Virus record (IMG/VR): IMGVR_UViG_3300032214_000715
Span: 62,001 to 126,000 of that record
Length of the DNA: 64,000 nucleotides
Direction: 5' to 3' (one strand)
Shown here: piece by piece, positions 13,150 to 51,399 of the stretch
How the letters are laid out: every line of letters begins with the position of its first letter
How positions within the stretch are numbered: the stretch's first letter is position 1
Notes under the pieces: generated by a model
Database searches by the model: none
What the model was told of the DNA's origin: nothing
The model's input: only the letters and a program-made list of their open reading frames with translations
Translations under genes and position numbers: made by a program

Positions 13150-13151
13150 AG

Positions 13152-13369: not shown

Positions 13370-13376
13370 AATAATT

Positions 13377-13466: not shown

Positions 13467-13471
13467 AATTT

Positions 13472-13556: not shown

Positions 13557-13567
13557 AATTTAAATTT

Positions 13568-13645
13568 TGGCAGGGGATCCAGGATTTGAACCTGGGAATG
13601 TCGGAATCAAAATCCGATGCCTTAGACCAACTTGGCTAATCCCCT
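13568..13645 (-). tRNA. tRNA-Gln(TTG)
   Basis: Cloverleaf with CCA; 5' end overlapped by the HNH ORF. Confidence 0.92.
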
Positions 13646-14086
13646 TTTGTTGTATTTTCCTCTTTTTTTACCGGATAAAGATGTTGAAATATTCTTTTTG
13701 TGTTCTTCTGATTTTGGTTTTGTGGATCCTTTATTCTTTTTCCCATTTTCAGATAACATATTTTTAGTCTGTTCTTCTCCGTATTTAAGAACAGATCGCT
13801 CGTATGGAGAAAGATGTGTTCCACGGTCTACTTGATCTAAGTGATTATCTTTATATGATCCCCAATAGATATGATTTGGATTTGAACATTTAGGATTATT
13901 ACAGGCATGACACACGATAGCATTGTCTCCCTTTTTAGGGATAGATGTATTAAGAGTGAATGCCAAAAGCCCAGTTAAATGATAAGAATATTTCAATCCT
14001 CTTTCGTCACATTTTTCATATAGTTTAATATGCGTCATTCTTTCATCTTTTGAACTAAACATATATTCTTTAATATCAATTGGCAT
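13622..14086 (-). CDS. HNH-type (zinc-binding loop) homing endonuclease with NUMOD3-like tail
   Basis: VCHACNNPKCSNPNH...N and KSEEHKKNIS; start at MPID after AAGGA RBS. Confidence 0.8.
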   Translation of the reverse strand: MPIDIKEYMFSSKDERMTHIKLYEKCDERGLKYSYHLTGLLAFTLNTSIPKKGDNAIVCHACNNPKCSNPNHIYWGSYKDNHLDQVDRGTHLSPYERSVLKYGEEQTKNMLSENGKKNKGSTKPKSEEHKKNISTSLSGKKRGKYNKRGLAKLV

Positions 14087-14125
14087 AATAATTCCTTTGT
14101 TTTTATTATTTAGTAAAACAACATA

Positions 14126-14158
14126 AATTCTATGCTCTCCCAATTGAGCTAACCCCCA
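14126..14158 (-). pseudogene. Orphan tRNA 5' half
   Basis: TGGGGGTTAGCTCAATTGGGAGAGCA gives acceptor strand plus D-arm, then breaks off before the HNH gene. Confidence 0.65.
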
Positions 14159-14168
14159 TCTGAATAAA

Positions 14169-14230
14169 ACAGGATGCTTTTTACGTTTCAAATTAAAAGT
14201 TTGATGTATAAAGTTTGCTGTACGCATCCT
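14169..14230 (-). ncRNA. Mini-RNA carrying a Lys(TTT)-like anticodon stem-loop
   Basis: AGGATGC/GCATCCT closing stem, TACAGCAAA, TCAAA-CTTTTAA-TTTGA. Confidence 0.55.
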
Positions 14231-14236
14231 AAAATC

Positions 14237-14331
14237 TGGACCGTCGGACAGGATTCGAACCTGCATCAGTATACAGTGATACCACTCCAGTTACCTTTGT
14301 CCGCGTTCGTAGCGCGAGGGGATACCGACGG
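14237..14331 (-). tRNA. Non-canonical tRNA-Arg(ACG) with rewired D-arm
   Basis: 7-bp acceptor, anticodon arm, T-arm and CCA present; only 7 nt where the D-arm belongs. Confidence 0.7.
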
Positions 14332-14341
14332 ATTGTATTCT

Positions 14342-14417
14342 TGGTGCCGCCTCTAGGGATTGAACCTAGTTCTCTGGTGCTTCAAACCAGCGTGAGGACC
14401 ACCTTCACCAAAGCGGC
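14342..14417 (-). tRNA. tRNA-Phe(GAA)
   Basis: Cloverleaf with CCA. Confidence 0.92.
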
Positions 14418-14429
14418 TAAAACTTCTTA

Positions 14430-14504
14430 GGGGTGACCAACGGAATTCGAATCCGTACTATCACGGTCACAGCATGAGGTGCTAACCATTACACTATGGT
14501 CACT
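14430..14504 (-). tRNA. tRNA-His(GTG)
   Basis: Cloverleaf with C discriminator; CCA not fully encoded; -1 base is A. Confidence 0.88.
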
Positions 14505-14519
14505 CCTAAGCAGTCTTTT

Positions 14520-14594
14520 TGGTGGAGGATACCGGGGTCGAACCGGTGACTATGCCTTGCAAGGGCATCGTGTTCCCAACTATACCAATCCCCC
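14520..14594 (-). tRNA. tRNA-Ala(TGC)
   Basis: Cloverleaf, G3.U70, CCA. Confidence 0.94.
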
Positions 14595-14603
14595 AATAAA
14601 ACA

Positions 14604-14661
14604 ACAGGATCCTTATTTTTTCAATTACAAGTTGAATTTTAAAATTTGCTGTAAGGATCCT
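14604..14661 (-). ncRNA. Mini-RNA carrying a Thr(TGT)-like anticodon stem-loop
   Basis: AGGATCCTTA/TAAGGATCCT stem, CAGCAAA, TTCAA-CTTGTAA-TTGAA. Confidence 0.55.
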
Positions 14662-14668
14662 AAAACTT

Positions 14669-14745
14669 TGGCGCACCGTAGGGGACTTGAACCCCTGGCC
14701 TCGGCAGTGACAGTGCCGCGATCTAACCAACTGATCTAACGGTGC
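14669..14745 (-). tRNA. tRNA-Asp(GTC)
   Basis: Cloverleaf with CCA. Confidence 0.94.
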
Positions 14746-14752
14746 GGAAATT

Positions 14753-15029
14753 TGGTGGGACCAGGGGGGTTCGAACCCCCGACCAACGGATTAACCTACC
14801 ACTATAGTTTTCACTACCAGTTTCCTGTTTGTGGTCTGGACTATACCTTCATCGTATCATTTCTGACTTAGATGCCCGCCGTCTAGTCTCTACACGTTCC
14901 CATTACTGGGCTTCGCTCGGTATCGCCATTTTACAGGGTTCACCGAATTTGACGGGTTCTACTTACAAAATTTCTTTTGTAGCACTCCTATTTTAAAGTC
15001 CGCTGCTCTACCGACTGAGCTATAGTCCC
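14753..15029 (-). tRNA. tRNA-Lys(TTT), intron-containing
   Basis: Exons 15029-14996 and 14794-14753 rebuild GCGGA-CTTTTAA-TCCGT. Confidence 0.88.
14795..14995 (-). mobile_element. Group I intron (about 201 nt, no ORF) in the tRNA-Lys anticodon
   Basis: AAATTCGGTGAA, GTAGAGACTAGACGG and AAGGTATAGTCC core elements; terminal G. Confidence 0.88.
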
Positions 15030-15088
15030 TTTATCAATCAACAGAACACAGTGTACTCGTTAGGGTAATTACTGTCAACAACTATCGG

Positions 15089-15164
15089 TGGTCTCCGTGC
15101 CCGGATTTGAACCGGGACCGCTCCGCCCCAAACGGAGTATGCAACCAGGTAACACTTCACAGAG
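15089..15164 (-). tRNA. tRNA-Pro(TGG)
   Basis: Cloverleaf with CCA. Confidence 0.92.
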
Positions 15165-15300
15165 ATAAAATTTCTTTTATTTTACACATTATGTATAAAT
15201 AAACGGTGAATCATAAGATTGTTTGATTAGGGCCAAACAATCAACCACACGAGGAGTGATGGCTGTCTGATTCGCAAGTATTTATAACGAGGAGAATCAA

Positions 15301-16182
15301 ATGAAATATAAATCACCACTGTGTTCATGCATAGTATGTCATGAAACAAAATCAGCAAAAGGCATATTTACCCATTATATAGTAAGTCACACTGAAGAAG
15401 GGTCAAACAGATTACAGCGTGGACAAAAAAATGGCGTCGAAAATGCAAAAAAATCAAACAATAAAAATTTCACTGAGAGAATTAAAAAATATGATCAGTC
15501 TCCAAAACAATGTATAAATTGCAACAAAAAATTAGATTATGACAAAAAATTTAGTAAATTTTGCAATCACTCTTGCTCCGCGTCTTACAACAATAATTTG
15601 CGCAGTGCCGATACAATTAGAAAACAAGGTAATTCTCTGAAAGAAACTCTTAAAAATATTTTTGAGTCAATCTCTAAAATAAAATTTAAAACTTGTACTT
15701 ATTGTTATAAAAATTACACATGGCACAAAGGAATGTCATTTAAATTTTGCTGTATAATCTGCAAAGAAAAGGAACAATTCCATAGATTATCTACTCTTGC
15801 AAAAGATCGTGGTCTTGGAGGGGTCAGACCGTCTAAACGAATACTGTACAAAGGAGTATTGCTTGGGTCCACATATGAAGTTAAATTGGCAGAATCACTT
15901 GATGATAATTGCATCAAATGGATAAAGCCAGCACGATTGAACTACGTGGATCCATTCGGAAAAGAGCGCACCTATGAAGCAGATTTTTATCTGCCAGAAT
16001 ATAATGTTTATCTTGACCCTAAAAATGACTTTTTAATTAATAATATTAATCCAAGATTAGGTTTTAAAGATTCAGAAAAAATTCATTTAGTATGTAAACA
16101 AAATGATGTTCAAATTTTCATACTTGATAAAACGCAATTAACATGGCAGCATGTTAAAAACATTATTGATGGTTCCTCGTGA
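15301..16182 (+). CDS. Zn-finger plus PD-(D/E)XK putative homing endonuclease
   Basis: Several CxxC pairs; STYE...YEADFYLPEYNVYLDPK; TATAAATA at about 15195. Confidence 0.7.
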   Translation: MKYKSPLCSCIVCHETKSAKGIFTHYIVSHTEEGSNRLQRGQKNGVENAKKSNNKNFTERIKKYDQSPKQCINCNKKLDYDKKFSKFCNHSCSASYNNNLRSADTIRKQGNSLKETLKNIFESISKIKFKTCTYCYKNYTWHKGMSFKFCCIICKEKEQFHRLSTLAKDRGLGGVRPSKRILYKGVLLGSTYEVKLAESLDDNCIKWIKPARLNYVDPFGKERTYEADFYLPEYNVYLDPKNDFLINNINPRLGFKDSEKIHLVCKQNDVQIFILDKTQLTWQHVKNIIDGSS

Positions 16183-16243
16183 AGGAATCGAACCTCCGTC
16201 TGTAGAATGTAAATCTACGGCCCTACCATTAGACGAACGAGGA
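16170..16243 (-). tRNA. tRNA-Val(TAC)
   Basis: Cloverleaf with CCA. Confidence 0.88.
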
Positions 16244-16266
16244 AAATTAAAAAAATAAGTATAACA

Positions 16267-16354
16267 GGGTTGCGGAACCTGGATTCGAACCAGAACTTGC
16301 ATTAGATGTCTCAGGGTTATGAGCCCCGCGTTTTGCCAATTAAACTATTCCGCT
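16267..16354 (-). tRNA. tRNA-Met(CAT), initiator-like, with long variable region
   Basis: 1:72 mismatch and GGG/CCC anticodon stem; about 17-nt variable loop. Confidence 0.8.
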
Positions 16355-16363
16355 GTATTCTAT

Positions 16364-16723
16364 TTATAAACCTAACGTCTTGTAACCATATTTCTTTGCT
16401 ACTTTGACAGAAACGCCAAGCGCAGCAGCACATGGAAACCGAACATGTTTCTTGAACCGATATCCATTTAAGGTGAATGGTTTCAACACTGTGTCACAAT
16501 TCCAACAATTTCGTTGACAACTGATGTAACCAAGTTCTTCTAACTGATTACGCAACTTAGCGAACTCATCGTGATCTTTATTGCTATGTGTAATCATTTT
16601 ATGGTGACCACTGAGAATTTTAATCAAATCATCTGGTGTAGGGTTCTCACGATCAGACAACAATGTATATTCTGTCGTGACATGTACATCAGTTAGGTAT
16701 TGTTCATCAATAGTGAAATCCAT
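16364..16723 (-). CDS. Hypothetical protein
   Basis: GAGGT RBS before MDFT. Confidence 0.7.
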   Translation of the reverse strand: MDFTIDEQYLTDVHVTTEYTLLSDRENPTPDDLIKILSGHHKMITHSNKDHDEFAKLRNQLEELGYISCQRNCWNCDTVLKPFTLNGYRFKKHVRFPCAAALGVSVKVAKKYGYKTLGL

Positions 16724-16846
16724 AATTACCTCTAAAAATATTTCTGTATACACCTGCTGACATGGGCACTAAGGTTAATAGTTTGTGCCTAGATTTTTTA
16801 CAGCCGATGAATCATTGTCACGACATAGCTAATAGCGACAACTTTA

Positions 16847-16886
16847 CCTGACGATTTTATAAATATCCTGACGATTTTATAAATAT
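16847..16886. repeat. 20-bp perfect tandem duplication
   Basis: cctgacgattttataaatat x2. Confidence 0.9.
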
Positions 16887-16971
16887 AAAATCAGCATCTA
16901 ACTCATGTGTCTTACCACACTATATATTAAATAATATTTTAACACATCAGCATGTGTATACAGAAACAAAA

Positions 16972-17058
16972 TGGAGTGCCGAGAGGGATTTGAACCCCCG
17001 ATGTCCTTTCGGATAGGGATTTGCAATCCCTCACATTCGACCGCTCTGTCATCGGCAC
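16972..17058 (-). tRNA. tRNA-Cys(GCA) with long variable arm
   Basis: Cloverleaf, U73, TCC-GAAA-GGA extra arm. Confidence 0.88.
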
Positions 17059-17134
17059 ATCGTATTCTTAAGGGGCACAGTGTCTGTCGTTTAAGAGTAG
17101 GCATCCTTCAGCCACTCCCCCAGATAAATCTATT

Positions 17135-17212
17135 TGGTGGTGATGGTTGGAATTGAACCAACCCCATTCTTCCTTATGAGGGAAGCGTACAGACCATCTA
17201 TACTACATCACC
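17135..17212 (-). tRNA. tRNA-Met(CAT)
   Basis: Cloverleaf with CCA. Confidence 0.88.
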
Positions 17213-17219
17213 TATTATT

Positions 17220-17296
17220 TGGTACCCACGGTTGGATTTGAACCAACGACTTTCGCCTTATCAAGACGCTACTCTGACCAACTGAGTTACGCGGGT
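17220..17296 (-). tRNA. tRNA-Ile(GAT)
   Basis: Cloverleaf with CCA. Confidence 0.9.
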
Positions 17297-17370
17297 ATAT
17301 AACCATATTTGAACACACTCAGGAGGTCAAATTCCTTTTACCAACCAGTTATGGTGAATGTGTTCAAATA

Positions 17371-17469
17371 TAGCGACCCTTTGTGGGCAGGATTCGAACC
17401 TGCAAGTGGCTTCTATTTCCACTGGCCCTATTAGAGGCCTATGTTTACCATATTCCATCACCACGGGTC
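17371..17469 (-). ncRNA. tRNA-like RNA (type II body, bulged 9-bp acceptor, abnormal anticodon loop)
   Basis: D-arm, long variable arm and perfect GCAGG-TTCGAAT-CCTGC T-arm. Confidence 0.6.
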
Positions 17470-17812
17470 ATCGGAGTCATGACTTCCGATTATGATCGAG
17501 GTTAATTACTCCTCTCTGTTAGACGCAATTTGAGTACAACTCAAGCGGCTCTTTCTAACATTTACCATAGTTCAGCACACTCAAACGGGTCTTTTCGCCA
17601 TTTCTCTTCCATGCCGTTCCACGTGAGAATGGGTAGAATGCGCTGAACTATGGTTAGTACGAGACACGATGAGCAATCCCAACTCCTCATGACCAATCGG
17701 TCACTTAGGTTAAACCTCATGCCACTTATGTACTACCATATTTGAACACACTCGCTCCCGCAATTAGACGGTTGCATTAACATCAAAAGGATGTGACGAA
17801 TGTGCTCAAATA

Positions 17813-17891
17813 TGGTACCCAGTATGGAATCGAACCGATTTCTCCAGCCGCACTTAAGAGGGTGGCGTCTTAACCAATAGACGAACTGAGT
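17813..17891 (-). ncRNA. tRNA-like RNA with distorted anticodon arm (CTCTTAA loop)
   Basis: Acceptor, D-arm, T-loop and CCA present; anticodon and T stems are bulged. Confidence 0.55.
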
Positions 17892-17981
17892 ATAACCATA
17901 TTTGAACACACTACCCAGCGTATCTAGAAAACTGTTTGTACATTAGCAATGTGCTCAAATATGGTGAAACTACGTTTTCAA

Positions 17982-18191
17982 TTACATCAACCAAATGCCG
18001 TCATAATAATATTGCCAGTGATAAGAAACACTACCAGTATCCCATTTAACCATAATTTCGTTATCATCACGGCGGCTGGCTTGTTCTATTGGAATAAGTT
18101 TATATATCATTCCCTCATTACCAGTATAAGAAGATTTTACTCTATCTCCGATTCTGAGAGACTGAAATGGAACATTCGATAGTTTTTGCAT
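17982..18191 (-). CDS. Hypothetical protein
   Basis: AGGAGG RBS. Confidence 0.7.
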   Translation of the reverse strand: MQKLSNVPFQSLRIGDRVKSSYTGNEGMIYKLIPIEQASRRDDNEIMVKWDTGSVSYHWQYYYDGIWLM

Positions 18192-18833
18192 TATGGCCTC
18201 CTATGCCATATTAAGATCCATTAAAAAATCCAAACAGTAAAATCTTTTGTGATTACTCTCCTACTATATTTGAAGATACTAGTAGACTTGCGGTCGCTTC
18301 ATCGGTGTCGTTGTGCGTCCCACTCGCATCCATTTTGTCGCTCTTTCGAGAACACCAAAACTAATACCTTCAAATATAGGCCCCACCGTTAACTGGTCAT
18401 ATCCCTAGAGTTACTTTTAGAAGGATTGTAGCACGGTGGGCACACCTGTCCTTCTCTACACTGTGTTTACTACTATTGCCTGCCCTAGGGATTAGGTACC
18501 TACCCTAGCGACTCATAGTGGATTTGTAGATAATCCGCTGCTCTTGCTAGTTTACACCATATTTTAGCAGACACGGGCCGATTCCTTATCCGTGTTTATT
18601 CTTCCCTGTGCTGGCCAGTCGGGTCGAGGCAAACTGCTAAAATATGGTGACCTGTGTTCGTATGCGGTATTGATTGACATACGGGAAAGGTCAGCGTTCC
18701 CTCTATCGGCCCTGATTTTACAGCTAGCGCGAAATTGGCGTCGGTGGTCCTAGACCTGAAGTGGTGCGGGGTCATTTCGCACGATTGCCACAAGGCTTTC
18801 GCCATCTTTCACTTACCGACATTGAATTATCAC

Positions 18834-19232
18834 TTATGATAGAAGTAATTTTTTTGATCCTTGCAGGAAATTCTGCAATTCTTTGTTTGTGCAAGCAATA
18901 GGCAAAGGAACTTTTCTCTTAACCTGCTGAACATATTTACTATCTTTGTTATTGGCATACCAATCTAGATTATCTTCCTGCATAGCAAACAAGACTGAAA
19001 TAAAACGATCTTCTTCGCCAGAATTGCTACCCACTAGTTTATATCCAACACCTAAGTTTTTTGGATGAAATTTATCCACCCATGATAAAAATTCGTTTGT
19101 TGTTATTCCTTGTGGGAAGAGATCCAAATTAGCCACACATCGCATGACATAATTTCCATACTGATCGGATTTAATCAGTTTTTTAGTTCCAACTGGAATG
19201 AGATGATCTTTTGATAAATTGAATTGTGTCAT
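18834..19232 (-). CDS. Hypothetical protein
   Basis: AAAGGT RBS before MTQF. Confidence 0.7.
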   Translation of the reverse strand: MTQFNLSKDHLIPVGTKKLIKSDQYGNYVMRCVANLDLFPQGITTNEFLSWVDKFHPKNLGVGYKLVGSNSGEEDRFISVLFAMQEDNLDWYANNKDSKYVQQVKRKVPLPIACTNKELQNFLQGSKKLLLS

Positions 19233-19257
19233 ATTGACCTTTTTAAGATAACTTGTT

Positions 19258-19332
19258 TGGTAGACCACCACGGTATCGAACCATGTTCTGTAGAGTAAGA
19301 GTCTACTGCATCACCATTAATGCTTGTGATCT
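19258..19332 (-). tRNA. tRNA-Lys(CTT)
   Basis: Cloverleaf with CCA. Confidence 0.88.
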
Positions 19333-19338
19333 ATTGAT

Positions 19339-19423
19339 TGGTGGAGTGTACTGGGATCGAACCAGTCGTGCCCGAAGGCGGCGGATTTACAGTCCACTGC
19401 ATCACCATTGATGCTTCCACTCC
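19339..19423 (-). tRNA. tRNA-Tyr(GTA)
   Basis: Type II cloverleaf with CCA. Confidence 0.93.
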
Positions 19424-19935
19424 ATTATTCTTTACCATAGTTCAACACACTACCAGTCCCGGGGACTTGAACCCCTTTGCTCTAGATAGTTTCCTGACAT
19501 TTCGGTCTGGCAAGTAATATGCTGAACTATGGTGCCAATCATTTACATTGGCTTAGGGAATTTCGGTCCTCACGGGTGCTCCGCTACATACCACCCATCT
19601 ACCATACAAATTATCCGGTCTTTGTATGTAGACTTTTTACTCTCATTTACCATATTGAAACACACTACCGCAAACTTTCAATGCACGATGCAGTCTATGG
19701 CATCCGTAATGTGCTTCAATATGGCGGCAAGTTTCGTGATAGTTTGATGACGTTGTAGAGGTTCACTATGGCGTGAACTTACAGAGCGCAATAACTTCTC
19801 CCTATCAAAAACCCACTTGCCTATTACCATAGTTCAACACACTGATGAGAATCACACTCCCCTATTTCTCACAATAGGTTACGCCTAGGAGTCACACACA
19901 GATTCGGCTGTGCTGCGATACAATACGCTGAACTA

Positions 19936-20010
19936 TGGTACCCCTGAACGGTTACGATCCGTCTTCTCAGCCTTGAAAGGGCCGTGTTCTAGCCACTAAA
20001 CTACAGGGGC
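19936..20010 (-). tRNA. tRNA-Glu(TTC)
   Basis: Cloverleaf; CCA overlaps the start of a conserved hairpin. Confidence 0.9.
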
Positions 20011-20026
20011 AAATACTCTATGCTGA

Positions 20027-20057
20027 TTCTTAAAGAACTGTTGCTGAACTCTCAGCG
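20027..20057 (-). promoter_or_regulatory. boxB-like hairpin plus boxA-like antitermination motif
   Basis: GCTGA-GAGT-TCAGC then GTTCTTTAAGAA; also at 21727-21756 and 22060-22087, boxA alone at 22874-22885. Confidence 0.65.
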
Positions 20058-20118
20058 TATGAACATATTATATGCTAACGCTGATTTATTGTCAACAGTC
20101 TTTTGTCAATTTGTTGTT

Positions 20119-20439
20119 TGGTGCCCGGAGCCGGAATCGAACCGGCACGGCCGAAGCCGAGGGATTTTAAGCGTGTTGTCTCAAAGTTTCCAATGAGCAC
20201 GGACTATCTCTTTACCTTCAACATTACTTGTTAAGGCAGTGGGCGTTCTATGCTGGTTATTAAGAGGGCTTTACCTCTCCAGTAGTCTCTACACCTTCAC
20301 TGAATGTATTCAGTGCTTGGCTCGCGATTGCCATTTTACAGGCTCTCCCGAATTAACCCACAGTTTACTCACACATTTCTGTGTGAGGGGGACGGGCTTT
20401 CTGGTCCTCCCTTGTGTCTACCTATTTCACCATCCGGGC
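20119..20439 (-). tRNA. tRNA-Leu(TAA), intron-containing
   Basis: Exons 20439-20408 and 20171-20119 rebuild AGGGA-CTTAAAA-TCCCT. Confidence 0.88.
20172..20407 (-). mobile_element. Group I intron (about 236 nt) at tRNA position 31/32
   Basis: TTAATTCGGGAGA, GTAGAGACTA and AAGAGATAGTCC core elements; terminal G. Confidence 0.85.
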
Positions 20440-20520
20440 GTTTTGTTAACTTTCCATTAATTATGTTTGTAATTTTATAGACAATATAATACATTTTAAT
20501 AACATGGTTAATGAAGTTTG

Positions 20521-20594
20521 CTGGCCTGATTGGGATCGAACCAATGACCTAACGATTAACAGTCGTTTGCTACTACCGTCTGAGCTACAGGCCA
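20521..20594 (-). tRNA. tRNA-Asn(GTT), no encoded CCA
   Basis: Cloverleaf. Confidence 0.9.
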
Positions 20595-20611
20595 GCAAAC
20601 TTCACTAATTT

Positions 20612-20689
20612 TGGTGGGAGCGGTCGGACTCGAACCGACATCTGCGCGATTATGAGTCGCGAGTCATTAACCAATTAGACGACACTCCC
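20612..20689 (-). tRNA. tRNA(CAT), probably Ile2 (lysidine type)
   Basis: Cloverleaf with CCA; third CAT tRNA, identity inferred. Confidence 0.85.
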
Positions 20690-20735
20690 AATCTTTTATC
20701 TAACAAACAAAGTATAACTGTATTATTTACAGTTG

Positions 20736-21521
20736 TCAACTAGTTCTTAGAATTTTTTCTAGTTCATCAACAATCTTATTCAGATCATTTTCTACATTAT
20801 CGCTCCAAATGTATCTTATTTTAAATCCACACATTTGAGCAAGTTGTTCTTTCTTTCTATCCTTCTGCCAGATTTCTTCTCTAGTTCCCATAGATTTATA
20901 TGGTACCTTGAATTCTTCTGTTAAAGTCTTAGGATGATACGCTATTCCTTGATATTCAACAATGTATTTTATATCTAGAAACACCAAATCATAAAAAAAT
21001 ATTTGAGAATCATCCCTTAAAAAGTATTCTCTTCCATTTTTATGAAAGAAAACATTAGTGACTTTTGGAATCTGTTCTAGAAGACGCTCAATTACAACTT
21101 GACTTTCAACCGAGGCATATGAAGTCCTCGGATTTCTCAGATTTCCCTCGCGTATCAATTGTCGAGTGTGCGCGGAAACTTCTGGTTTGTCTAAGCCCAA
21201 TTCTGCTGCCTTTGAGAACTTATTACGCCCGATCCCTAATCCTTTTTTACCCTTCATTCCATAAGAAGGGTTCTTAGTCTTTTTTTCGGGATTTTTCTTA
21301 CATAATGATTCGTGCTGAGAAATGCTATTTGAATTTTTTCCTACGAAATCACAAAACTTACATTTGTATTCAGCAAGCTTAAACTGGTCTGCTTTTTCTC
21401 TAACTAGAGAAGAGAACAATTTTCCAGTTTTACATTGCTTGGATCCATAATGGATCTTTAGATTATTAGACGTTATCTCATTTTTACATGAGATACAAGA
21501 ACATAAATATTTTGCTACCAT
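20736..21521 (-). CDS. Vsr/EDxHD-like putative homing endonuclease with Zn fingers
   Basis: YDLVF...VEYQGIAYH...KDRKK...GFKIRYIW. Confidence 0.7.
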   Translation of the reverse strand: MVAKYLCSCISCKNEITSNNLKIHYGSKQCKTGKLFSSLVREKADQFKLAEYKCKFCDFVGKNSNSISQHESLCKKNPEKKTKNPSYGMKGKKGLGIGRNKFSKAAELGLDKPEVSAHTRQLIREGNLRNPRTSYASVESQVVIERLLEQIPKVTNVFFHKNGREYFLRDDSQIFFYDLVFLDIKYIVEYQGIAYHPKTLTEEFKVPYKSMGTREEIWQKDRKKEQLAQMCGFKIRYIWSDNVENDLNKIVDELEKILRTS

Positions 21522-22137
21522 ACATCTATTTATGCTTTGACCTATTGTTCTATGTTTTTACTATATTTGAACACACTGCCAGTCCCGGGGACTTGAACCC
21601 CTTTGCTCTTGATAGTTTCCCGACATTTCGGTCCGGCAAGCAATGCGCTCAAATATAGTATCACGCTACGTCAACAGTGCTAGTATTTAGCACCTCAGTT
21701 GGCGTGATACAAAAACTCTATGCTAATTTTTAAAGATCATCGCTGATTTCTCAGCGTTGAAGACAGTATATCAGAGTTCTGATTTATTGTCAAGAAACTG
21801 CCAGGTAGCTTAATGTGTGATTTCCACTACCCTGTTACTCTGTATCAGTCTAGATTGCTCTAGCATCAACCTGCGTCACACTGTGTGCAGACAGTATCAT
21901 AACTATATCAGGACTCCCATTTATTGTCAACAACTCTCAATGATTAGATCGAAATGCACTCGCATCTGCTTTTTGAGCCGCGTGTTCTACACCCTTGATT
22001 CCTAGACTAGTACTAGAGGCGTGTGCCCATTTACACTAGCACTTCGATCTAATCACTGATTGTTAAAGAACTTGTTGATTTCTCAACTGTTAGAGACAGT
22101 ATATCAGGGTTCTGATTTATTGTCAAATTTTTGGTTA

Positions 22138-22470
22138 TCACTCCGTAGGCACAATACCAACTGCGCCACCGTGCGCCTCAATGTATGCCTCTACCAGTTC
22201 AACTGGAACATATGCAAACACGGTTTGGCTATCATCAATCGAGTCGCCACCCTCTTTGTACTCGGCCGCCTCAGGCCAAGGTGCAGACGGAAAGCCAACC
22301 TCTACAGCAGTGTAGGGACCCTCACTATCGCGTGGAGTGCAATAATGCCCCGCACTCGCCTGTACCGACAGTGTAGTACCGTCAGTGCACACAATGCCTG
22401 GGCGAACTCTTACCATGAGTCCTTCATGCGCTTCATGCGTAACCGTAGGCAGTACCAATTTGTAGCTCAT
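22138..22470 (-). CDS. Hypothetical early protein
   Basis: Own promoter 22500-22528 and RBS. Confidence 0.75.
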   Translation of the reverse strand: MSYKLVLPTVTHEAHEGLMVRVRPGIVCTDGTTLSVQASAGHYCTPRDSEGPYTAVEVGFPSAPWPEAAEYKEGGDSIDDSQTVFAYVPVELVEAYIEAHGGAVGIVPTE

Positions 22471-22710
22471 TTCTTGTTCCTTTTTTCTAACTTGAATACA
22501 GTATATCAGTTACCTGATTTATTGTCAACTGTTATCTGTAGTGTGCTTATCAGCCCATCCTGTTAATTCAAGCTATACACCCTTACCAGATGTTCACACC
22601 GTTACATGCGGGGGTTATTTCCCCTATCGTATGCCCCCGTAACGAGAGGCATATGGGCTGATAAACACACTATAGATATCTGTAATGCGTTTTAGGCTGA
22701 AGACTTCATA

Positions 22711-22780
22711 AACTCTAGAGGGATTCGAACCCTCGTCACCGACCGATGGGCCAGTGTCTTATCCGCTAGACGATAGAGAC
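22711..22780 (-). pseudogene. tRNA-like element with short anticodon loop and no CCA
   Basis: D-arm and GAGGG-TTCGAAT-CCCTC T-arm, inside long hairpin 22678-22874. Confidence 0.6.
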
Positions 22781-23108
22781 TCCCTCCTTTTTCGCTCGGC
22801 AAAGCTACTCTGATCGGGGTGAAGTAACAGACCTTCTGACGATTGCCGCCATCAGCCTAAAACACACTACAGATTGTTAAAGAACTGGACAGTTTACGCT
22901 ACTGTCAAACGAAGACCTGTAGGCTATCAGGCTGCCACGCTGATGTTAACACCGATCAACGGGATTGTGCTTCCCGAAACTTCTAGACAGTGACGGTGGG
23001 AGTTTGTTGTCCCGCTTATGTCAACAGTCTCAGAGACCCTGTTTTTTGATCAGTTCTTCAGCGTATGAATACATTATAGTTGAAGACACATTTATTGTCA
23101 AATTTTGG

Positions 23109-23339
23109 TCAATCAACTCCGAAATGTTGCTTGATTTTATCTGCATTAGTGCCACCGATCTGAAGTTGGTATTCAGCATAGTCGGCACATTTCCGAACAG
23201 TGTCTTCTATAAGCAACTCGGCGAACTTTTTTCGGTCAAATACTGTCCGGATAGTGCTCAATCCACCAGCATTCATATCAAAGTCGCAAGGCACCTTTAC
23301 CCAGCATTGATCTTCAAGTTCAAGAATTCGTTCGTTCAT
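23109..23339 (-). CDS. MNERI-family small protein, copy 3
   Basis: MNERI...KFAELL...HFGVD. Confidence 0.75.
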   Translation of the reverse strand: MNERILELEDQCWVKVPCDFDMNAGGLSTIRTVFDRKKFAELLIEDTVRKCADYAEYQLQIGGTNADKIKQHFGVD

Positions 23340-23644
23340 TTTTGTGTATCTAGATAAAAAGTGGCCACACGCAACATCGCCATTGCCTGTTCACGGTTTG
23401 TGGGGAGAGGAACCTGATCTTGTTCGATAGTTTGTTCTTCAACTCCGAAATGTTGTTCGATCCGCATAGCAATGATTAGACCAGGACCGCCAAGTTTAGA
23501 ACCATCATATTCTTGGGCAATGGACATACATTCCGCCACAATCAACTCGGCGAACTTTTCTAAATCTTGCTCAATACCAAATCGTACCATTGATACCGCA
23601 TCAAAACCAGCCTGTAGAGCAAGGTCTTTAATTCGTTCGTTCAT
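23336..23644 (-). CDS. MNERI-family small protein, copy 2
   Basis: MNERI...KFAELIVAEC...HFGVEE. Confidence 0.75.
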   Translation of the reverse strand: MNERIKDLALQAGFDAVSMVRFGIEQDLEKFAELIVAECMSIAQEYDGSKLGGPGLIIAMRIEQHFGVEEQTIEQDQVPLPTNREQAMAMLRVATFYLDTQK

Positions 23645-23895
23645 TCTTCAACTCCGTTTTTCATAAAGTCGTGTGCCCAGTCTTGAGTGTAGTCGCAGAA
23701 TGGACAGATCCATCCACGAACAGTGGGAACCAATACGCCACGATCACCAGCGACAACGGGATGATCACTACGGTTAGCACGACAAGTAAAAGGGTGCATT
23801 CTGTGTGGTAATGTAGAGTCAGTGTCGCCAAATTTTCGCCACGGTCCAAACTGATGCTGCCATAGTTTCTCTACTTCTTGTGGAGTAAAAGTCAT
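23641..23895 (-). CDS. Hypothetical Zn-binding protein
   Basis: HPFTC...WICPFC; ends GVEE. Confidence 0.7.
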   Translation of the reverse strand: MTFTPQEVEKLWQHQFGPWRKFGDTDSTLPHRMHPFTCRANRSDHPVVAGDRGVLVPTVRGWICPFCDYTQDWAHDFMKNGVEE

Positions 23896-24149
23896 TCTTC
23901 AACTCCGAAATGTCGTTTGATCTTATTTCCAACATATATCAATGCCTCGTTGAAGCCTTCATAATACTCACTTTTGGTATTGGCATATCGGCTATTCACA
24001 GATAACTCCGCACACTCTTCCACAATGAGTTCGGCAAACTTTTTTACAAACTTTTCACTATTGACTGACAATGCGATATTTGACACTGGATGCCGTGTAG
24101 TAGCATATTCATTAGCCTGTTGGGCAAGTTCAAAGATTCGTTCGTTCAT
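23892..24149 (-). CDS. MNERI-family small protein, copy 1
   Basis: MNERI...KFAELIVEEC...HFGVEE. Confidence 0.75.
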   Translation of the reverse strand: MNERIFELAQQANEYATTRHPVSNIALSVNSEKFVKKFAELIVEECAELSVNSRYANTKSEYYEGFNEALIYVGNKIKRHFGVEE

Positions 24150-24186
24150 TTTGATAGTCCTTCCGCCACACCTTGCTCATCTAGTT

Positions 24187-24402
24187 TCAAAGTTTCAAGT
24201 TTAATTGTTTCTGTGCTTTCTTTAGCGTTGATGCAGGAACATCGGTACCTACCTCATTCCAGTGTGTTGAAACATGATAAGTTCCATCGGAATTCTTTCT
24301 GTCTACTTTAACCGTTTTATTATGAAAAATATGACGAGGATTAGGATGCGTCACTACTACCCTATCACCTGGGCGATACTGGACACGAAAATCATCCATC
24401 AT
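24187..24402 (-). CDS. Hypothetical SH3/KOW-like protein
   Basis: YRPGDRVVV; ATGA-coupled start. Confidence 0.6.
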   Translation of the reverse strand: MMDDFRVQYRPGDRVVVTHPNPRHIFHNKTVKVDRKNSDGTYHVSTHWNEVGTDVPASTLKKAQKQLNLKL

Positions 24403-24593
24403 TCTTCTGACTCCCAAACAATTTCATCAGTCTCACCAAGCGGCTCGACACGAACAATCTTGGCACCGTAAATCAGGTTCTTGTTCCAGTAATTGGTCAC
24501 AGACTTCTTGACGCCGGAAACAGAATCATGACCGTAAGTGGTCCAAGACTCTACCTTACCTTCAAAGAGTGCAGTGACATGGTATGCTTTCAT
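24399..24593 (-). CDS. Hypothetical early protein
   Basis: Own promoter and AGGAG RBS. Confidence 0.7.
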   Translation of the reverse strand: MKAYHVTALFEGKVESWTTYGHDSVSGVKKSVTNYWNKNLIYGAKIVRVEPLGETDEIVWESEE

Positions 24594-24658
24594 TTCGCTT
24601 GCTCCTGTTTTCTAACTTGAATACAGTATAACAGATACCCGATTTATTGTCAAATTTG

Positions 24659-24687
24659 TGGCACCCCGGAGAGGATTCGAACCTCCA
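24659..24687 (-). pseudogene. 3' half of a split non-canonical tRNA-Arg(TCT)
   Basis: GGAGG-TTCGAAT-CCTCT-CCGGGGT-G-CCA. Confidence 0.75.
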
Positions 24688-24721
24688 TTGAGATAAATAA
24701 AATATCACGGAGAATAAATCA

Positions 24722-25318
24722 ATGTTTCACTATGTCTATAGAATTACTAATATAAAAAACAATAAACACTATTATGGCAAAAGATCATCTAAAGTTACTC
24801 CATTTGAAGATTTAGGCAAAAAATATTTCAGTTCCTGTAAAGATAAGTTATTTATTAATGAGCAAAAAAAATTTCCCCAAAATTTCAAATATAAAGTAAT
24901 AAGATGCTTCAATAGCTCAACTAGTGCTATAAATTTTGAAATAAAATTACACAATAAATTTCAAGTAGATATCTCACCTCATTTTTATAATAGGGCAAAA
25001 CAAACATCTAATAAATTTCAGACATCTTACGTTTCTATCGATACTAGAAAAAAATTATCAGATGCGACCAGAAAGACTAATATAGGTGCTATAACGTCTA
25101 AAAAAAGAGCGGAATCTAATAGAAAAAATGGAGACGTTAAATGGCAAAAATATATAGAAATAGTAAACGCTTCCACTATTGATTTTACCAAATATGGGTG
25201 GGCTAAATTATTGGCCGACCTACTAGGAATATCTCATCAACAATCGTCCAAATGGCTCAAAAGGCATTGCCCTGAAATTTATTCAACGTGTTTCAAACGA
25301 AAAAATGGTCCCGCGTAG
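24722..25318 (+). CDS. GIY-YIG homing endonuclease (Seg-like)
   Basis: HYVYRITNIKNNKHYYGKR...YFSS...E...FYN. Confidence 0.88.
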   Translation: MFHYVYRITNIKNNKHYYGKRSSKVTPFEDLGKKYFSSCKDKLFINEQKKFPQNFKYKVIRCFNSSTSAINFEIKLHNKFQVDISPHFYNRAKQTSNKFQTSYVSIDTRKKLSDATRKTNIGAITSKKRAESNRKNGDVKWQKYIEIVNASTIDFTKYGWAKLLADLLGISHQQSSKWLKRHCPEIYSTCFKRKNGPA

Positions 25319-25380
25319 TTGAATCGAACAACTATTCCAAATTTAGAAGATTTGTATATTTTCCATTATATGAACGCGAG
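25306..25380 (-). tRNA. tRNA-Arg(TCT), canonical, nested
   Basis: Cloverleaf with CCA. Confidence 0.88.
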
Positions 25381-25388
25381 AAATTCTT

Positions 25389-25439
25389 ATCACTCCAATT
25401 ACACTGCTACGCTTTAGAAGAGCGTTGTGGTACCGAGGT
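25389..25439 (-). pseudogene. 5' half of a split non-canonical tRNA-Arg(TCT)
   Basis: ACCTCGG-TACCACA-ACGCT-CTTCTAA-AGCGT-AGCAGTGTAATTGGAG. Confidence 0.75.
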
Positions 25440-25492
25440 ATAGATTCAAAGTATATCTGGTGTTTGATTATTTGTCAAGTGTTTGTGTTGAT

Positions 25493-25575
25493 TGGTGCTG
25501 AAGGTGAGACTCGAACTCACGTAGGTTTCCCGACGGCTTACAAAACCGTTGCAATTGCCGCTATGCGACTCCAGC
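25493..25575 (-). tRNA. tRNA-Thr(TGT) with long variable arm
   Basis: Cloverleaf, GG-GAAA-CC extra arm, CCA. Confidence 0.88.
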
Positions 25576-48246: not shown

Positions 48247-51200
48247 TTACTTGATGCCGGCTAATTTTTTCATCGTTTTGGAAATATTTTCAGAAAGATT
48301 TTCCTTAACAATTTCTGCTTTCACCTTTGTGTGTGGTAGTGTTGTCTGGTCACGATTCTGACGATTCAAACCACCACTTATTAAATGAGTCATGTAATTT
48401 AATTCAGTTTGGAACTGTTCATCTTTACTGAGTTCGCCGCGACTGTTAGCCCACTCGTTCAACTGCTCATCGCAACCGCACTTACCTTCGTAAACGCCTT
48501 GTCCGCATTCGTTACATGATTCTGTTGATTCGTCAGTCTTTTCTTTGTCTTCGGACTCATCAGAATCTTCGTCTTCGTCTTCGTCTTCCTCTTCGTCGTC
48601 ATCAGAAGAATCTTCTTTGCCTGACTTGACTGGGTATTCTTTTCCATCTACTTTCATTGTTTCGCCCGGCTGAACTCCATCAGCGCGATGTTTTTCTAAT
48701 TCACCGGTGAATTTATTTCCCTCTTTAACATCGTCATCCTCTTCTTCATGATCCGCGTGATCAGGCTCTTCAGAAGCTTCGGGTTCTTCACGAGAGCCAA
48801 GCATGCGCTTTAAGAAATCAAATTCTTGATCACCGTTATCACCATCTTGTGGTTCTAATGTTCCCATTATCTCATCATGCGCTAGTGGCTCTACTTCAAT
48901 AGCAGTGCCGCTGGTGTCGTCTGCGTGACTCATTCCTGCTCCACCGCCCATGCCAGCACCCATGCCGATTCCAGCTTGTGATAGTATCTTCATCAGTGCT
49001 TGTGCGTCTTCGTCAGTGGCACTAACACTTACGCTGTCGCCCATGCCGTTTTGTCCAGTAGAAGTAGTTACAGTCATACCCTCATTTAGTAATGCGTGTA
49101 ATTGACGATCCCATGCTTCCATTTGTGCGTCTTTAACTTTTTTCATTTCTAATTTTTCCTTTTTATTCTTGCCTTCCGCCACATCTTTCTTTTTATGATC
49201 TTTGTCCGGATATCTTTCTCCGGGGAACGGACCCTCCCTATCAGGGTGTCTCTCACCAGGCCACTTACTCTTACGATTCGGATACTTGTCACCTTCCGCC
49301 ACACCTTGCTTAGCGTTGATTGACTTTTCCAATTCTTCCGGACTCGGAACTCCTTTAAGTTGCCTCACGGTTTGATTTAGTCTAGCAAGTGACACCTTGC
49401 CGTCTTTTCTTACTGGCAATATGCGCGGCAGTCCAATTCTACCACTAAAACTAAATCCTATTATGTATGGATTCGCCTCTGATCGAAAGACTTTCTCAGC
49501 ACCTGCTTTTTTCAGTGCCTCAATTGCTCTCTCTACACTAACACCAGCATCAGATAATATGTTGCCTTCCGCCACACCTTGCTCGCTTTCGTACATAGCT
49601 TCGTTGGGAAATGGAAACTCAGCGTCATCTGACATTTCATCTTCAGTAGCGAACATGTCATCTACTCGTGATCCCAAATTTCTATCAATACTTCCCTCGG
49701 CAGCGTCTTCTATGTCGGCTCCTAATCCTTCGTCTGTCATGCTAGAAGTAGGACCAGCACCCAGTGCGCCGCCGATAAAGGTTTCGTCTAAATCTTCTTC
49801 TCCTAGCAGTGGCTTGGAATCTTTCATATAGCAGTCAAGTACATGTTCGCGACATTCTTCTTTGTCTCCGTACATAATTTTGTTTGGAATGAATCCGTTT
49901 TCAAAATAGTAATGTCTTAGTGCTTCGTATAGACCTTCATCTAACACCCAACCTTCTTCGCACATTTTGATTTCGTGAGGGAATCGTTGCTTAATTTCTT
50001 CTAGAGAATATCCCTCTGAAATTGACTTCTTAGATTCACCCATAGCTTGCTTGCGTATAGTTGAGAAATAAACATCTTCGCCCTTTTCTGGACCGTACTG
50101 ATCTATCATAGATGCTTTCATCTCGGATTTATCGTACTTGCTCTTTAGACGCGCTTCTTTTGCCTTGTGAGCGGCGGACATAGATACTTCGTCAACTTCT
50201 TCTTCTGACATTGGTTGACTCTGCTGTTGTTGTCCTTGAGTCATTGCCTGAACTGCGCCCTGTGCTGGCTTTGTTTGTTGTCCAGATTGTGCTGTGCTAG
50301 TCTGTGCTGGAAGAGTTGCTCCAGGCACTGCTGTTATTTTTCCACTCTCTATGCCCTGTTGTATTGTTTTCTGTAGAGTAGCGTCAGTGGTACTCAGCGC
50401 AGAAATTGGCTGGCCAGGACGAGGTTGTGGCTGTCCTGCTTTTGGAGGCACAACCATAGTTCCCGGAGGTAATTGCGTTGCCTCAGCTAACATAGTCGCT
50501 TCAACATGCTCCATCCAGTCTTTTAGTTTGTGTTTTACACTTGCTTTGCCTGGTAGTGTCTTTGGTTTGCTTCCCACGATCCAGCGTGATAGTTCATCAG
50601 TGTCCCATTTTTTAACTTCGCCGGTATCGCTATCACTATCCTTCTTTGGACGACCGCGTCCTTTTTTCACTGCTGGCTTGACCTTCTTTCCATCCTCGTC
50701 ATCGTCATTTTTACGACCATAACCACCGGGTTCTGCTTTATGAATTTTACCAGTTTTGGTTTCTTTTGTGCCTTCCGCCACACCTTGCGGTGCAGGTATT
50801 ATAGACCAACCGCGCATATTTGCTGACTTACTGATTTCACCTTTGCTCTTGAATACCGTTGCTTTTGCTTTGTCTGTTACCCAAGTCATTTGGCCGCCAC
50901 CTGCAGGATGTCCTCTTAGATACTTTGATCCATTTTTAACGATATAACCCTCATTCAAGGAGCCTTCCGCCACACCTTGATTTTTTGTAGAACTTTCGTC
51001 TTTTAGTTTATGCTTAACACTTGCTTTACCAGGTAGAGTCTTTGGCTTGCTTCCAACAATCCAACGAGCCAACTCATCTGTGTCCCACTTCTTTACTTCA
51101 CCAGTATCGCTATCACTGTCTTTCTTAGGGCGTCCGCGACCCTTTTTTACAGCAGGCTTTACTTTCTTGCCGTCTTCGTCGTCATCGTTCTTGCGACCGT

Positions 51201-51399
51201 ATCCGCCTGGTTCTGCTTTATGAATTTTACCAGTCTTGGTTTCTTTAGTGCCTTCATTTACACTCAATCTAGCATCTTCGTTTAAAGTTTTGCGGCCGTC
51301 GGCATACTGACTAGCAACTTTTTTAGCAGCATCATCTACTTTATTAGATGTTACTTCGCTAAGACTATCCATTTTAGAAATTAATGATTTGAAATCCAT
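48247..51399 (-). CDS. Large acidic modular protein (probable internal head/scaffold-type)
   Basis: Low complexity, duplicated AT-hook module, five VAEG motifs. Confidence 0.7.
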   Translation of the reverse strand: MDFKSLISKMDSLSEVTSNKVDDAAKKVASQYADGRKTLNEDARLSVNEGTKETKTGKIHKAEPGGYGRKNDDDEDGKKVKPAVKKGRGRPKKDSDSDTGEVKKWDTDELARWIVGSKPKTLPGKASVKHKLKDESSTKNQGVAEGSLNEGYIVKNGSKYLRGHPAGGGQMTWVTDKAKATVFKSKGEISKSANMRGWSIIPAPQGVAEGTKETKTGKIHKAEPGGYGRKNDDDEDGKKVKPAVKKGRGRPKKDSDSDTGEVKKWDTDELSRWIVGSKPKTLPGKASVKHKLKDWMEHVEATMLAEATQLPPGTMVVPPKAGQPQPRPGQPISALSTTDATLQKTIQQGIESGKITAVPGATLPAQTSTAQSGQQTKPAQGAVQAMTQGQQQQSQPMSEEEVDEVSMSAAHKAKEARLKSKYDKSEMKASMIDQYGPEKGEDVYFSTIRKQAMGESKKSISEGYSLEEIKQRFPHEIKMCEEGWVLDEGLYEALRHYYFENGFIPNKIMYGDKEECREHVLDCYMKDSKPLLGEEDLDETFIGGALGAGPTSSMTDEGLGADIEDAAEGSIDRNLGSRVDDMFATEDEMSDDAEFPFPNEAMYESEQGVAEGNILSDAGVSVERAIEALKKAGAEKVFRSEANPYIIGFSFSGRIGLPRILPVRKDGKVSLARLNQTVRQLKGVPSPEELEKSINAKQGVAEGDKYPNRKSKWPGERHPDREGPFPGERYPDKDHKKKDVAEGKNKKEKLEMKKVKDAQMEAWDRQLHALLNEGMTVTTSTGQNGMGDSVSVSATDEDAQALMKILSQAGIGMGAGMGGGAGMSHADDTSGTAIEVEPLAHDEIMGTLEPQDGDNGDQEFDFLKRMLGSREEPEASEEPDHADHEEEDDDVKEGNKFTGELEKHRADGVQPGETMKVDGKEYPVKSGKEDSSDDDEEEDEDEDEDSDESEDKEKTDESTESCNECGQGVYEGKCGCDEQLNEWANSRGELSKDEQFQTELNYMTHLISGGLNRQNRDQTTLPHTKVKAEIVKENLSENISKTMKKLAGIK
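49172..50979 (-). repeat. 17-bp repeat CAAGGTGTGGCGGAAGG (QGVAEG)
   Basis: Exact at 50963-50979, 50771-50787, 49565-49581 and 49292-49308; variant at 49172-49188; exact orphan at 24159-24175. Confidence 0.9.

Follow-up and report, generated by a model that had tools for sequence, protein, structure and literature searches.

Short connectors that are conserved as DNA separate the modules of a long protein encoded in the stretch analysed here, which comprises 64,000 nucleotides (nt), bases 62001 to 126000 of a 239,163-base-pair (bp) IMG/VR virus contig, and is called the window below. The protein is specified by an open reading frame (ORF) of 1050 amino acids (aa), and its connector, referred to as the linker, is the 17-mer CAAGGTGTGGCGGAAGG, read as QGVAEG. 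Comparison of related sequences shows that the linker marks the points at which whole modules have been deleted, inserted and exchanged. The explanation that we favour, with a probability of roughly 0.7, is that the ORF encodes a packaged polyprotein in which the linkers are protease sites and, at the same time, in-frame junctions for recombination.

A scan of the window located five exact copies of the 17-mer, at 24159, 49292, 49565, 50771 and 50963, and a variant with two mismatches (AAAGATGTGGCGGAAGG) at 49172, all on the minus strand. The copy at 24159 lies between genes and is called the orphan. The other four and the variant stand in one ORF, as follows.

48247 to 51399, minus strand: 1050-aa multi-module ORF, putative packaged polyprotein, with four exact linkers and one variant (ORF call)
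50963 to 50979, minus strand: linker copy A, exact 17-mer, QGVAEG, between modules 1 and 2
50771 to 50787, minus strand: linker copy B, exact, between modules 2 and 3
49565 to 49581, minus strand: linker copy C, exact, between modules 3 and 4
49292 to 49308, minus strand: linker copy D, exact, between modules 4 and 5
49172 to 49188, minus strand: linker copy E, variant AAAGATGTGGCGGAAGG, KDVAEG, between modules 5 and 6

All five copies within the ORF are in frame, as QGVAEG or KDVAEG, and their spacings (120, 273, 1206 and 192 nt) are all divisible by three. Shuffled sequences gave a mean of 0.11 matches to the 17-mer, and none of 100 shuffles reached six. The remainder of the 239,163-bp record was searched as well and held zero copies beyond the six in the window, so that a genome-wide repeat in the host phage was rejected. 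An earlier note on this DNA, made from its letters alone, had described the motif as present in four places plus one variant, each copy ending an unrelated module of 40 to 90 aa. The number of copies was confirmed, and the modules bordering them are indeed mutually unrelated, but the size range did not hold: cutting after the Glu would give pieces of 145, 64, 402, 91, 40 and 308 aa, only three of which fit.

An internal control for the constancy of the linker is provided by a duplicated module of the same ORF:

50998 to 51249, minus strand: AT-hook module, first copy, aa 51-134 (Pfam AT_hook)
50518 to 50769, minus strand: AT-hook module, second copy, aa 211-294 (Pfam AT_hook), 82% DNA identity to the first copy

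The two 84-aa copies differ by a single amino acid, yet their synonymous codons differ at 44 of the 81 codons that are able to vary (47 of 252 bases in all), and their synonymous sites are saturated. At this synonymous rate, the probability that all 20 linker codons would be unchanged is about 2e-7 (44/81 versus 0/20), which bears out the earlier observation that the duplicate is rich in synonymous changes and the motif has none. The AT-hook copies themselves point either to very strong purifying selection on the peptide or to selection against recombinable DNA identity between repeats.

The linker is widespread in other phages. Scans of IMG/VR for the exact 17-mer and for the 15-nt core described below identified at least 174 contigs in total, and these contig counts are lower bounds. 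The exact 17-mer was present in at least 120 contigs; among the matches listed, all 162 copies read as QGVAEG within long ORFs, whose lengths have a median of about 500 aa and reach 1570 aa, the sequences flanking the linkers were mutually unrelated, and copies were spaced by multiples of three. The scan for the core added 54 further loci, and 58 of the 61 hits listed were again in the QGVAEG frame. The base preceding the core at these 54 loci was C, G or A, never T; a T at this position would create a stop codon. As many as 9 linkers were present in one bearer ORF. In the literature library searched, no paper mentioned QGVAEG in phages.

Almost no GVAE linkers are carried by the orthologues of the 1050-aa protein from 79 syntenic loci, in which the neighbouring orf169 is for the most part about 60% identical. 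As one of these syntenic phages, G016, nevertheless has the linker in other genes, the linker has spread horizontally rather than having been inherited with one gene, and vertical inheritance together with this protein family was rejected. In related records of 260 to 360 kb (G016, G008, G001, G005 and G010), three to seven copies of the core, with at most one mismatch, were found per record; they lie on one strand only and are grouped in one to four places, which are phage-specific.

The motif is not invariant across phages, yet it is held as DNA far beyond what its peptide needs. Among 90 variants with a single mismatch, position 1 or 17 was altered in 62, and the five third-codon positions together in 12. 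Changes at position 1 replace Q with E or K, and those at position 17 replace G with A, D, E or V. This concentration of variation at positions 1 and 17 indicates that the conserved unit is the 15-nt core AAGGTGTGGCGGAAG; the third position of the next codon, just past the core, varies freely. The first two sets of loci had been selected by the motif, and an unbiased set of 69 loci was fetched with a 61-aa module from which the linkers had been trimmed off. Among its 44 distinct module copies, the exact core was present upstream of 14 and downstream of 18, and the core within two mismatches upstream of 34 and downstream of 33. In this module-ascertained sample, 36% of junctions carry the exact core and 76% carry it with no more than two mismatches. 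The nucleotide invariance claimed by the earlier note is consequently true of the four exact copies in the gene but not across phages, as the 36% of sampled junctions with an exact core show.

Synonymous sites in the linker have scarcely more freedom than non-synonymous ones: in the module-ascertained sample, departures from the canonical codons numbered 43 synonymous versus 59 non-synonymous. At 87 linker-like junctions, Val was encoded by GTG in 74% and Ala by GCG in 79%; genome-wide in related phages, GTG accounts for 7% of Val codons and GCG for 6% of Ala codons. Codons for the same amino acid were identical in about 78% of comparisons within linkers, regardless of how far the modules had diverged, and in 48-63% inside modules of 60-80% DNA identity.

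Chance, codon bias, a recent tandem duplication or mis-assembly of metagenomic reads could be invoked for a short repeat of this kind, and three of its codons (CAA, GGT and GAA) are indeed the preferred ones (80%, 58% and 83%). Codon usage, though, leads one to expect the sequence at about 0.16% of junctions, versus the 36-56% observed at unselected ones. As for duplication, the flanking modules are unrelated and the duplicated AT-hook module has saturated synonymous sites. What chance produces can be seen in 596 gigabases of bacterial genomes, in which the 17-mer had 120 hits, all single-copy, in GC-rich genomes (median 65%), in all six frames and inside ordinary genes; one alone of the low-GC hits examined resembled a mis-binned phage contig. 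Two database records of the phage are identical, although they are perhaps not independent assemblies, and a 17-nt repeat is below the word size of contig assembly (31), and hence would give no false joins. Codon bias, chance and recent duplication were rejected on the combined evidence of the shuffles, codon usage, the AT-hook comparison and the bacterial control, and we regard this whole group of explanations as hardly credible.

The sequence could also be kept uniform by selection on translation or RNA, for instance as a rare-codon or Shine-Dalgarno-like pause that aids the folding of modules, with shuffling as a by-product. The rare codons GTG and GCG do stand exactly at module borders, and GGAAGGA in the orphan is located 9 nt ahead of a start codon. 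A pause, however, would tolerate many sequences, and here one 15-mer dominates; no common RNA fold is possible, as the flanks differ at every copy; and the identical cassettes in unrelated contexts and the deletion joints reported below would be left unexplained. A known RNA family at the motif was ruled out, as there were zero Rfam matches at any copy. We consider such a cause quite improbable as the whole explanation.

The most direct evidence for recombination at the linker came from relatives that differ by whole modules. The units concerned are these:

50773 to 50964, minus strand: module 2, aa 146-209, 64 aa, insertion/deletion cassette (missing in locus L182 and metagenome contig X4)
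49294 to 49566, minus strand: module 4, aa 612-702, 91 aa, cassette (missing in L182, kept in metagenome contig X2)
49174 to 49293, minus strand: module 5, aa 703-742, 40 aa, cassette (missing in L182 and X2)
48250 to 49173, minus strand: module 6, aa 743-1050, conserved C-terminal part of the protein family

L182, the closest relative, is 75-84% identical in the neighbouring gp4-like, orf169, orf205 and lysozyme proteins. It carries a single linker (CAAGATGTGGCGGAAG) at the place of module 2 and another at the place of modules 4 and 5, its sequence is colinear on both sides of these single linkers, and module 6 follows directly after the second. The GAT codon of linker copy E is also present in the L182 linkers. 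Contigs (not reads) of two other aquatic metagenomes were aligned to the gene of the 1050-aa ORF, and joints with sides of only about 20 nt were discarded as linker-only matches from unrelated contigs. In X2, position 49171 is joined to 49292, so that 120 nt of module 5 are gone; 12 letters at the joint fit either side, and 169 nt are matched on the shorter side. In X4, position 50769 is joined to 50962, with the loss of 192 nt of module 2; here 18 letters fit either side, and 124 nt are matched on the shorter side. Logan contigs are built with a word size of 31, and these joins are not artefacts of assembly because the 17-nt repeat is shorter than that. Relative to the window, L182, X2 and X4 are without modules 2, 5 or 4+5, and the junctions fall within the motif.

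Exchange between otherwise unrelated contigs follows the same borders. The 61-aa module has 94-100% DNA identity between contigs that are similar only over linker, module and linker; the sole alignment between L308 and L312, for example, is 217 bp at 100% identity, that is, 17 + 183 + 17 nt. Other pairs of contigs share the same blocks in a different order or at a different spacing. For the high-identity blocks at the 174 loci, 42% of informative ends fell within 10 nt of a linker, versus 1.2% of random positions. Exchange breakpoints thus coincide with an in-frame motif between variable segments, the pattern sought when recombination at conserved motifs is tested for. The L182 arrangement, the X2 and X4 deletions, the 217-bp unit and the enrichment of block ends all support the earlier suggestion of a DNA-level recombination site for in-frame shuffling. 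Module 2 had zero homologues among the 120 linker loci compared.

The orphan was, as the earlier note had it, an exact copy between genes. Its setting is as follows.

24159 to 24175, minus strand: orphan exact linker, whose frame reads ..LDEQGVAEGLSK-stop (17-mer scan)
24187 to 24417, minus strand: 76-aa ORF, the 3' end of which overlaps the open frame of the orphan in another frame (found only in the near-identical record G015)

The orphan is located between the 76-aa ORF and an 85-aa ORF, among small ORFs and tRNA genes, in a frame that is open for only about 35 codons and has no start codon. The TGA that ends this frame overlaps the start codon (ATG) of the gene that follows, an arrangement usual between adjacent genes there, and the annotated 76-aa ORF ends 37 nt before this stop, in another frame. 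Coding linkers in L037, L040 and L153 have the same upstream context as the orphan (LDE-QGVAEG), and a linker followed by one to six aa and a stop was found in L030, L061, L109 and L125. The identical record G015 carries the same orphan sequence, and it alone, of 17 related records searched, has a homologue of the 76-aa ORF. The simplest reading is that the orphan is a relic of a linker that ended a small gene, the frame of which has since been broken by a frameshift. A programmed frameshift from the 76-aa ORF into the orphan frame was not adopted; no slippery site was seen by eye. A free-standing homing-endonuclease gene (phrog_314, E 2e-21; window 24722-25318, plus strand) is located about 550 bp from the orphan. 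Related endonuclease genes lie just upstream of linker-bearing genes in L018, L034 and L054, too few for an association.

These genes bear on the possibility of an active site-specific cassette system, in which the 15-nt core would be the target of a dedicated recombinase or nuclease that moves linker plus module in the manner of integron cassettes. Such a system would account for the conservation of the core at the DNA level, sharply bounded by positions 2 and 16, and for cassettes that are shared at 100% identity with breakpoints inside the core; the endonuclease gene near the orphan and its relatives beside linker genes would also fit it. Yet no integrase or other enzyme was noticed consistently near the linkers, the endonuclease is present at only three of about 330 loci, and the site has no inverted-repeat symmetry. 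The five intact sites in the phage itself would, moreover, be self-targets for a nuclease, and recombination of the T4 type is content with homology patches of less than 50 bp (PMC2839356). We consider a dedicated system unlikely.

The peptide side of the favoured explanation begins with the N terminus of the ORF:

51355 to 51399, minus strand: N-terminal 15-aa leader MDFKSLISKMDSLSE, ending L-S-E, candidate capsid-targeting propeptide (orthologue leaders)

The hydrophobic-x-Glu end of this leader is a sequence pattern only, and orthologues have leaders of the same type, such as MDFKSLLDQLSQLSE and MNFKDMLQKMSQLNE; we infer that MDFKSLISKMDSLSE may be a capsid-targeting propeptide. Many other bearer ORFs begin with leaders such as MKAYEFITE and MRAQEFITE (pattern M-[KR]-A-x-E-F-I-x-E) or MKINEIISE, which closely resemble the T4 capsid-targeting sequence MKTYQEFIAE, 10 aa ending in I-A-E and removed by gp21 (PMC8442874, PMC9026906). 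In T4, a change of that Glu to Asp blocks processing (PMC9026906). In its strict form the leader pattern was found in 17% of bearer ORFs and in 6% of the others (P = 3e-6). Leader and linker are directly joined in L079 (MRATEFIIEGVAEG) and L100 (MRINEILVEQGVAEG), and the V-A-E of the linker differs from the I-A-E of T4 by one conservative change. Following many bearer-ORF leaders (L089, L095, L111, L122, L154 and others), the stretch A-x-Q-A-A-I-A-I and then a Lys-rich stretch recur; this may be another standard part of bearer proteins.

A Gp23-type capsid protein and a Peptidase_S77 (gp21-type) protease are encoded in the related 300-360 kb records G016, G008, G001 and G003. Neither was found in the phage's own record, which is 68% complete and from which the region of the head gene cluster is missing. 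The capsid proteins of related phages carry HLAE-S, YLKE-N or LLSE-S at what is presumably the place of the maturation cut in T4 gp23. Diverged copies of the 61-aa module, from which the canonical DNA has been lost, retain V-N-E, V-T-E or M-E-E at both borders; even in these, Glu is the invariant residue, with Val or Met two places before it. These leaders, the gp21-type protease of the relatives, the capsid L-A-E and the [V/M]-x-E at the borders lend indirect support to the earlier idea that the motif may be a prohead-protease site. In the complete 359-kb relative (L264, G016:C1:84000-97000), the head cluster has the order portal, methyltransferase-like ORF, acidic 276-aa protein, protease, scaffold and capsid protein; the scaffold of G016 contains K-L-V-A-E-G-K, a linker-like site in a non-canonical DNA form.

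The domain content of the bearer ORFs is varied. Apart from the 1050-aa ORF, they encode GNAT, ParB_N, nucleotidyltransferase (NTP_transf_2) and 5'-nucleotidase (NT5C) domains and several DUFs. No peptidase family was found by Pfam scans of the 1050-aa ORF and nine other bearer ORFs. The two AT hooks of the 1050-aa protein fit a DNA-associated head protein. The internal proteins of T-even phages are diverse defence proteins with the targeting sequence alone in common (PMC3012670), and more than 30 variants are known from polymorphic loci (PMC2839356).

A simpler function for the peptide would be that of a flexible hinge in a multi-domain protein that stays uncut. Short Gly/Ala-rich linkers are common, most orthologues work without one, and the protein is known here as a sequence, from which its cleavage is deduced. 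A mere hinge, by contrast, would not require an invariant Glu with Val or Met two places before it in diverged copies, nor would it explain why, in L079 and L100, the linker follows the leader with nothing in between, or why the site resembles both the expected cut site of the capsid protein and the end of the T4 targeting sequence (PMC8442874). An uncut protein is, in our opinion, a doubtful alternative, if one that deserves to be kept in mind.

Several observations weigh against the packaged, cleaved polyprotein. The leader of the 1050-aa ORF (15 aa, L-S-E) differs in class from the T4-like M-[KR]-A-x-E-F-I-x-E, which in its strict form is present in only 17% of bearer ORFs. The gene adjoins head-completion, lysozyme and possible baseplate genes, not head genes; the protease is deduced from relatives, as the phage's own record lacks the head gene cluster; and the virion location and cleavage of the protein are likewise what we infer from sequence. 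Most of the roughly 60%-identical orthologues are without the linker, so it is dispensable for the function of the protein family. On the DNA side, a length of 15-17 nt gives homologous recombination little to act on, the analysis found neither a recombinase nor a nuclease specific for the linker site, and an added cause at the level of RNA or translation could contribute to the uniformity of the DNA.

On balance, we still favour the packaged polyprotein, which might work as follows. Most likely, the 1050-aa ORF would encode a packaged and later injected polyprotein of a T4-like freshwater phage of about 350 kb, in which one standard connector strings together small modules that would fold independently. 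The connector, x-G-V-A-E followed by G, resembles a prohead protease site of the T4 type (hydrophobic residue, any residue, Glu), and after head assembly the chain would be cut there into separate small proteins. At the same time, the 15-nt core, being one sequence in many genes and phages, serves as a short patch of homology in a constant frame; comparison shows that whole modules are deleted, inserted or exchanged there with the frame kept, by the phage recombination machinery or some site-specific activity. The general recombination system of the phage, acting on short homology, is the probable agent; for T4-type recombination, small homology patches of less than 50 bp suffice (PMC2839356). 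Frequent exchange would keep the core uniform, as copies that have drifted would cease to recombine and would be lost during the turnover of modules. We give about even odds to a broader proposition, namely that a standard in-frame connector, a protease-site codon string fixed as DNA and common to T4-like giant phages of fresh water, makes their packaged proteins into open cassette arrays, whose small injected effector modules (possibly anti-defence) are traded as plug-in units between genes and phages, possibly by way of excised circles or a dedicated enzyme.

If the favoured explanation is correct, one short sequence is selected twice, as a peptide (the cut site) and as DNA (the recombination handle). 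It would provide a concrete, testable mechanism by which giant phages diversify the proteins that they inject together with their DNA, a class of proteins that includes counter-defence functions such as T4 IPI. The 15-mer would then be a search key to hundreds of small modules, as yet uncharacterised, that the phages probably deliver into their hosts, and it would suggest a natural design rule, that foreign proteins can be loaded into T4-type capsids as cleavable chains. The broader proposition, if true, would make the arrangement a counterpart of integrons at the level of protein modules, and no natural example of the linker sequences that the modular theory of phage evolution postulates would be clearer.

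The surroundings of the 1050-aa ORF are conserved. In 80 related loci the gene order is gp4-like, orf169, orf205, 1050-aa ORF family and GH19 lysozyme (the last not always adjacent), and most of these 80 loci have module 6 downstream of orf205, with identities of 27-77%. Pfam scans of the ORF gave AT_hook only (two AT hooks), a PHROGs scan gave zero matches, and protein-atlas look-ups for modules 4 and 6 returned nothing usable. Megablast of the gene versus 50,697 phage records found no match and no cultured relative; tblastn found only a 45-aa patch in two Synechococcus phages. QGVYEG is encoded at window 48484-48501 (minus strand), inside the conserved C-terminal module and between Cys pairs, in other codons (CAAGGCGTTTACGAAGG), and it is probably unrelated to the linker. 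At window 48499-48655 there is an acidic, low-complexity run of Asp, Glu and Ser; unrelated metagenome DNA piles up on it, with contig depths in the thousands, and contig- or read-based analyses of this gene can be misled by it.

On the side of the orphan, three consecutive paralogous ORFs (76, 102 and 85 aa; window 23109-24149, minus strand) all start with MNERI and have HFGVE or HFGVD at or near the C terminus, with homologues in L024 and L026. The minus strand of window 9385-25575 is a region of RNA genes, with 25 Rfam matches to transfer RNA at 11647-25575, a permuted alpha-type transfer-messenger RNA (tmRNA) at 9385-9708 and two group I introns at 14814-15005 and 20180-20414. The two-piece type of tmRNA may hint at an alphaproteobacterial host.

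Among known systems, the internal proteins of T4 (IPI, IPII, IPIII and Alt, cut by gp21) offer a close parallel for the proteins themselves: they share a short N-terminal leader ending in hydrophobic-x-Glu, and they are diverse, rapidly exchanged, packaged and injected cargo from loci that are polymorphic among relatives (PMC3012670, PMC9026906, PMC2839356), packaging being presumed for the proteins described here. The T4 cargos, however, are separate genes with leaders of their own, whereas here the cargos are chained in one ORF and are separated by an internal motif that is fixed as DNA and would be the cut site. Polyvalent proteins of phages and conjugative elements (Iyer et al. 2017, PMC5512222) likewise combine many effector-like domains in one polypeptide, with ParB-like domains in both cases. 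They are held to enter the host along with the DNA, and their division into units is attributed to a metallopeptidase domain of their own; no such domain was found in the 1050-aa ORF and nine other bearer ORFs, and a text search of that paper found no mention of linkers or shuffling.

As regards the DNA, the promoter-early stem-loop elements (PeSLs) of T4-type phages are similar in that conserved repeats flank variable units, and close relatives differ by a unit between two repeats (here L182, X2 and X4); recombination between PeSL repeats was proposed, and was shown via mini-circles (PMC2839356, PMC4122927). But PeSLs are about 100 bp long, intergenic and equipped with promoter and terminator, whereas the linker has 15-17 nt, stands inside a coding frame in all copies but one, and must encode a usable peptide; an inverted repeat of the PeSL stem-loop type was absent at the linker site. 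The tail-fibre adhesins of T-even phages (gp37 motifs, gp38 glycine-rich motifs) also have in-frame conserved motifs between variable segments, and exchanges often occur in or near these motifs (PMC3157838, citing Tetart 1996 and 1998). In the adhesins the motifs build the structural core of a single domain, and what is swapped is receptor-binding loops; the linker, by contrast, separates whole independent modules that are exchanged across many unrelated proteins, and it resembles a cleavage site. Integron cassettes share the array of interchangeable units bounded by a recurring site and the gain and loss of single units, but they are whole genes with attC hairpins and an integrase, as opposed to in-frame modules at a non-palindromic site; no integrase was noticed near linker loci, where no systematic neighbourhood search was made. 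The linker works like the PeSLs and the T-even adhesin motifs, in proteins that resemble the T4 internal and polyvalent proteins, and it differs from each of them, being a motif of 15-17 nt that is intragenic, in frame, common to many unrelated proteins and probably a cleavage site as well.

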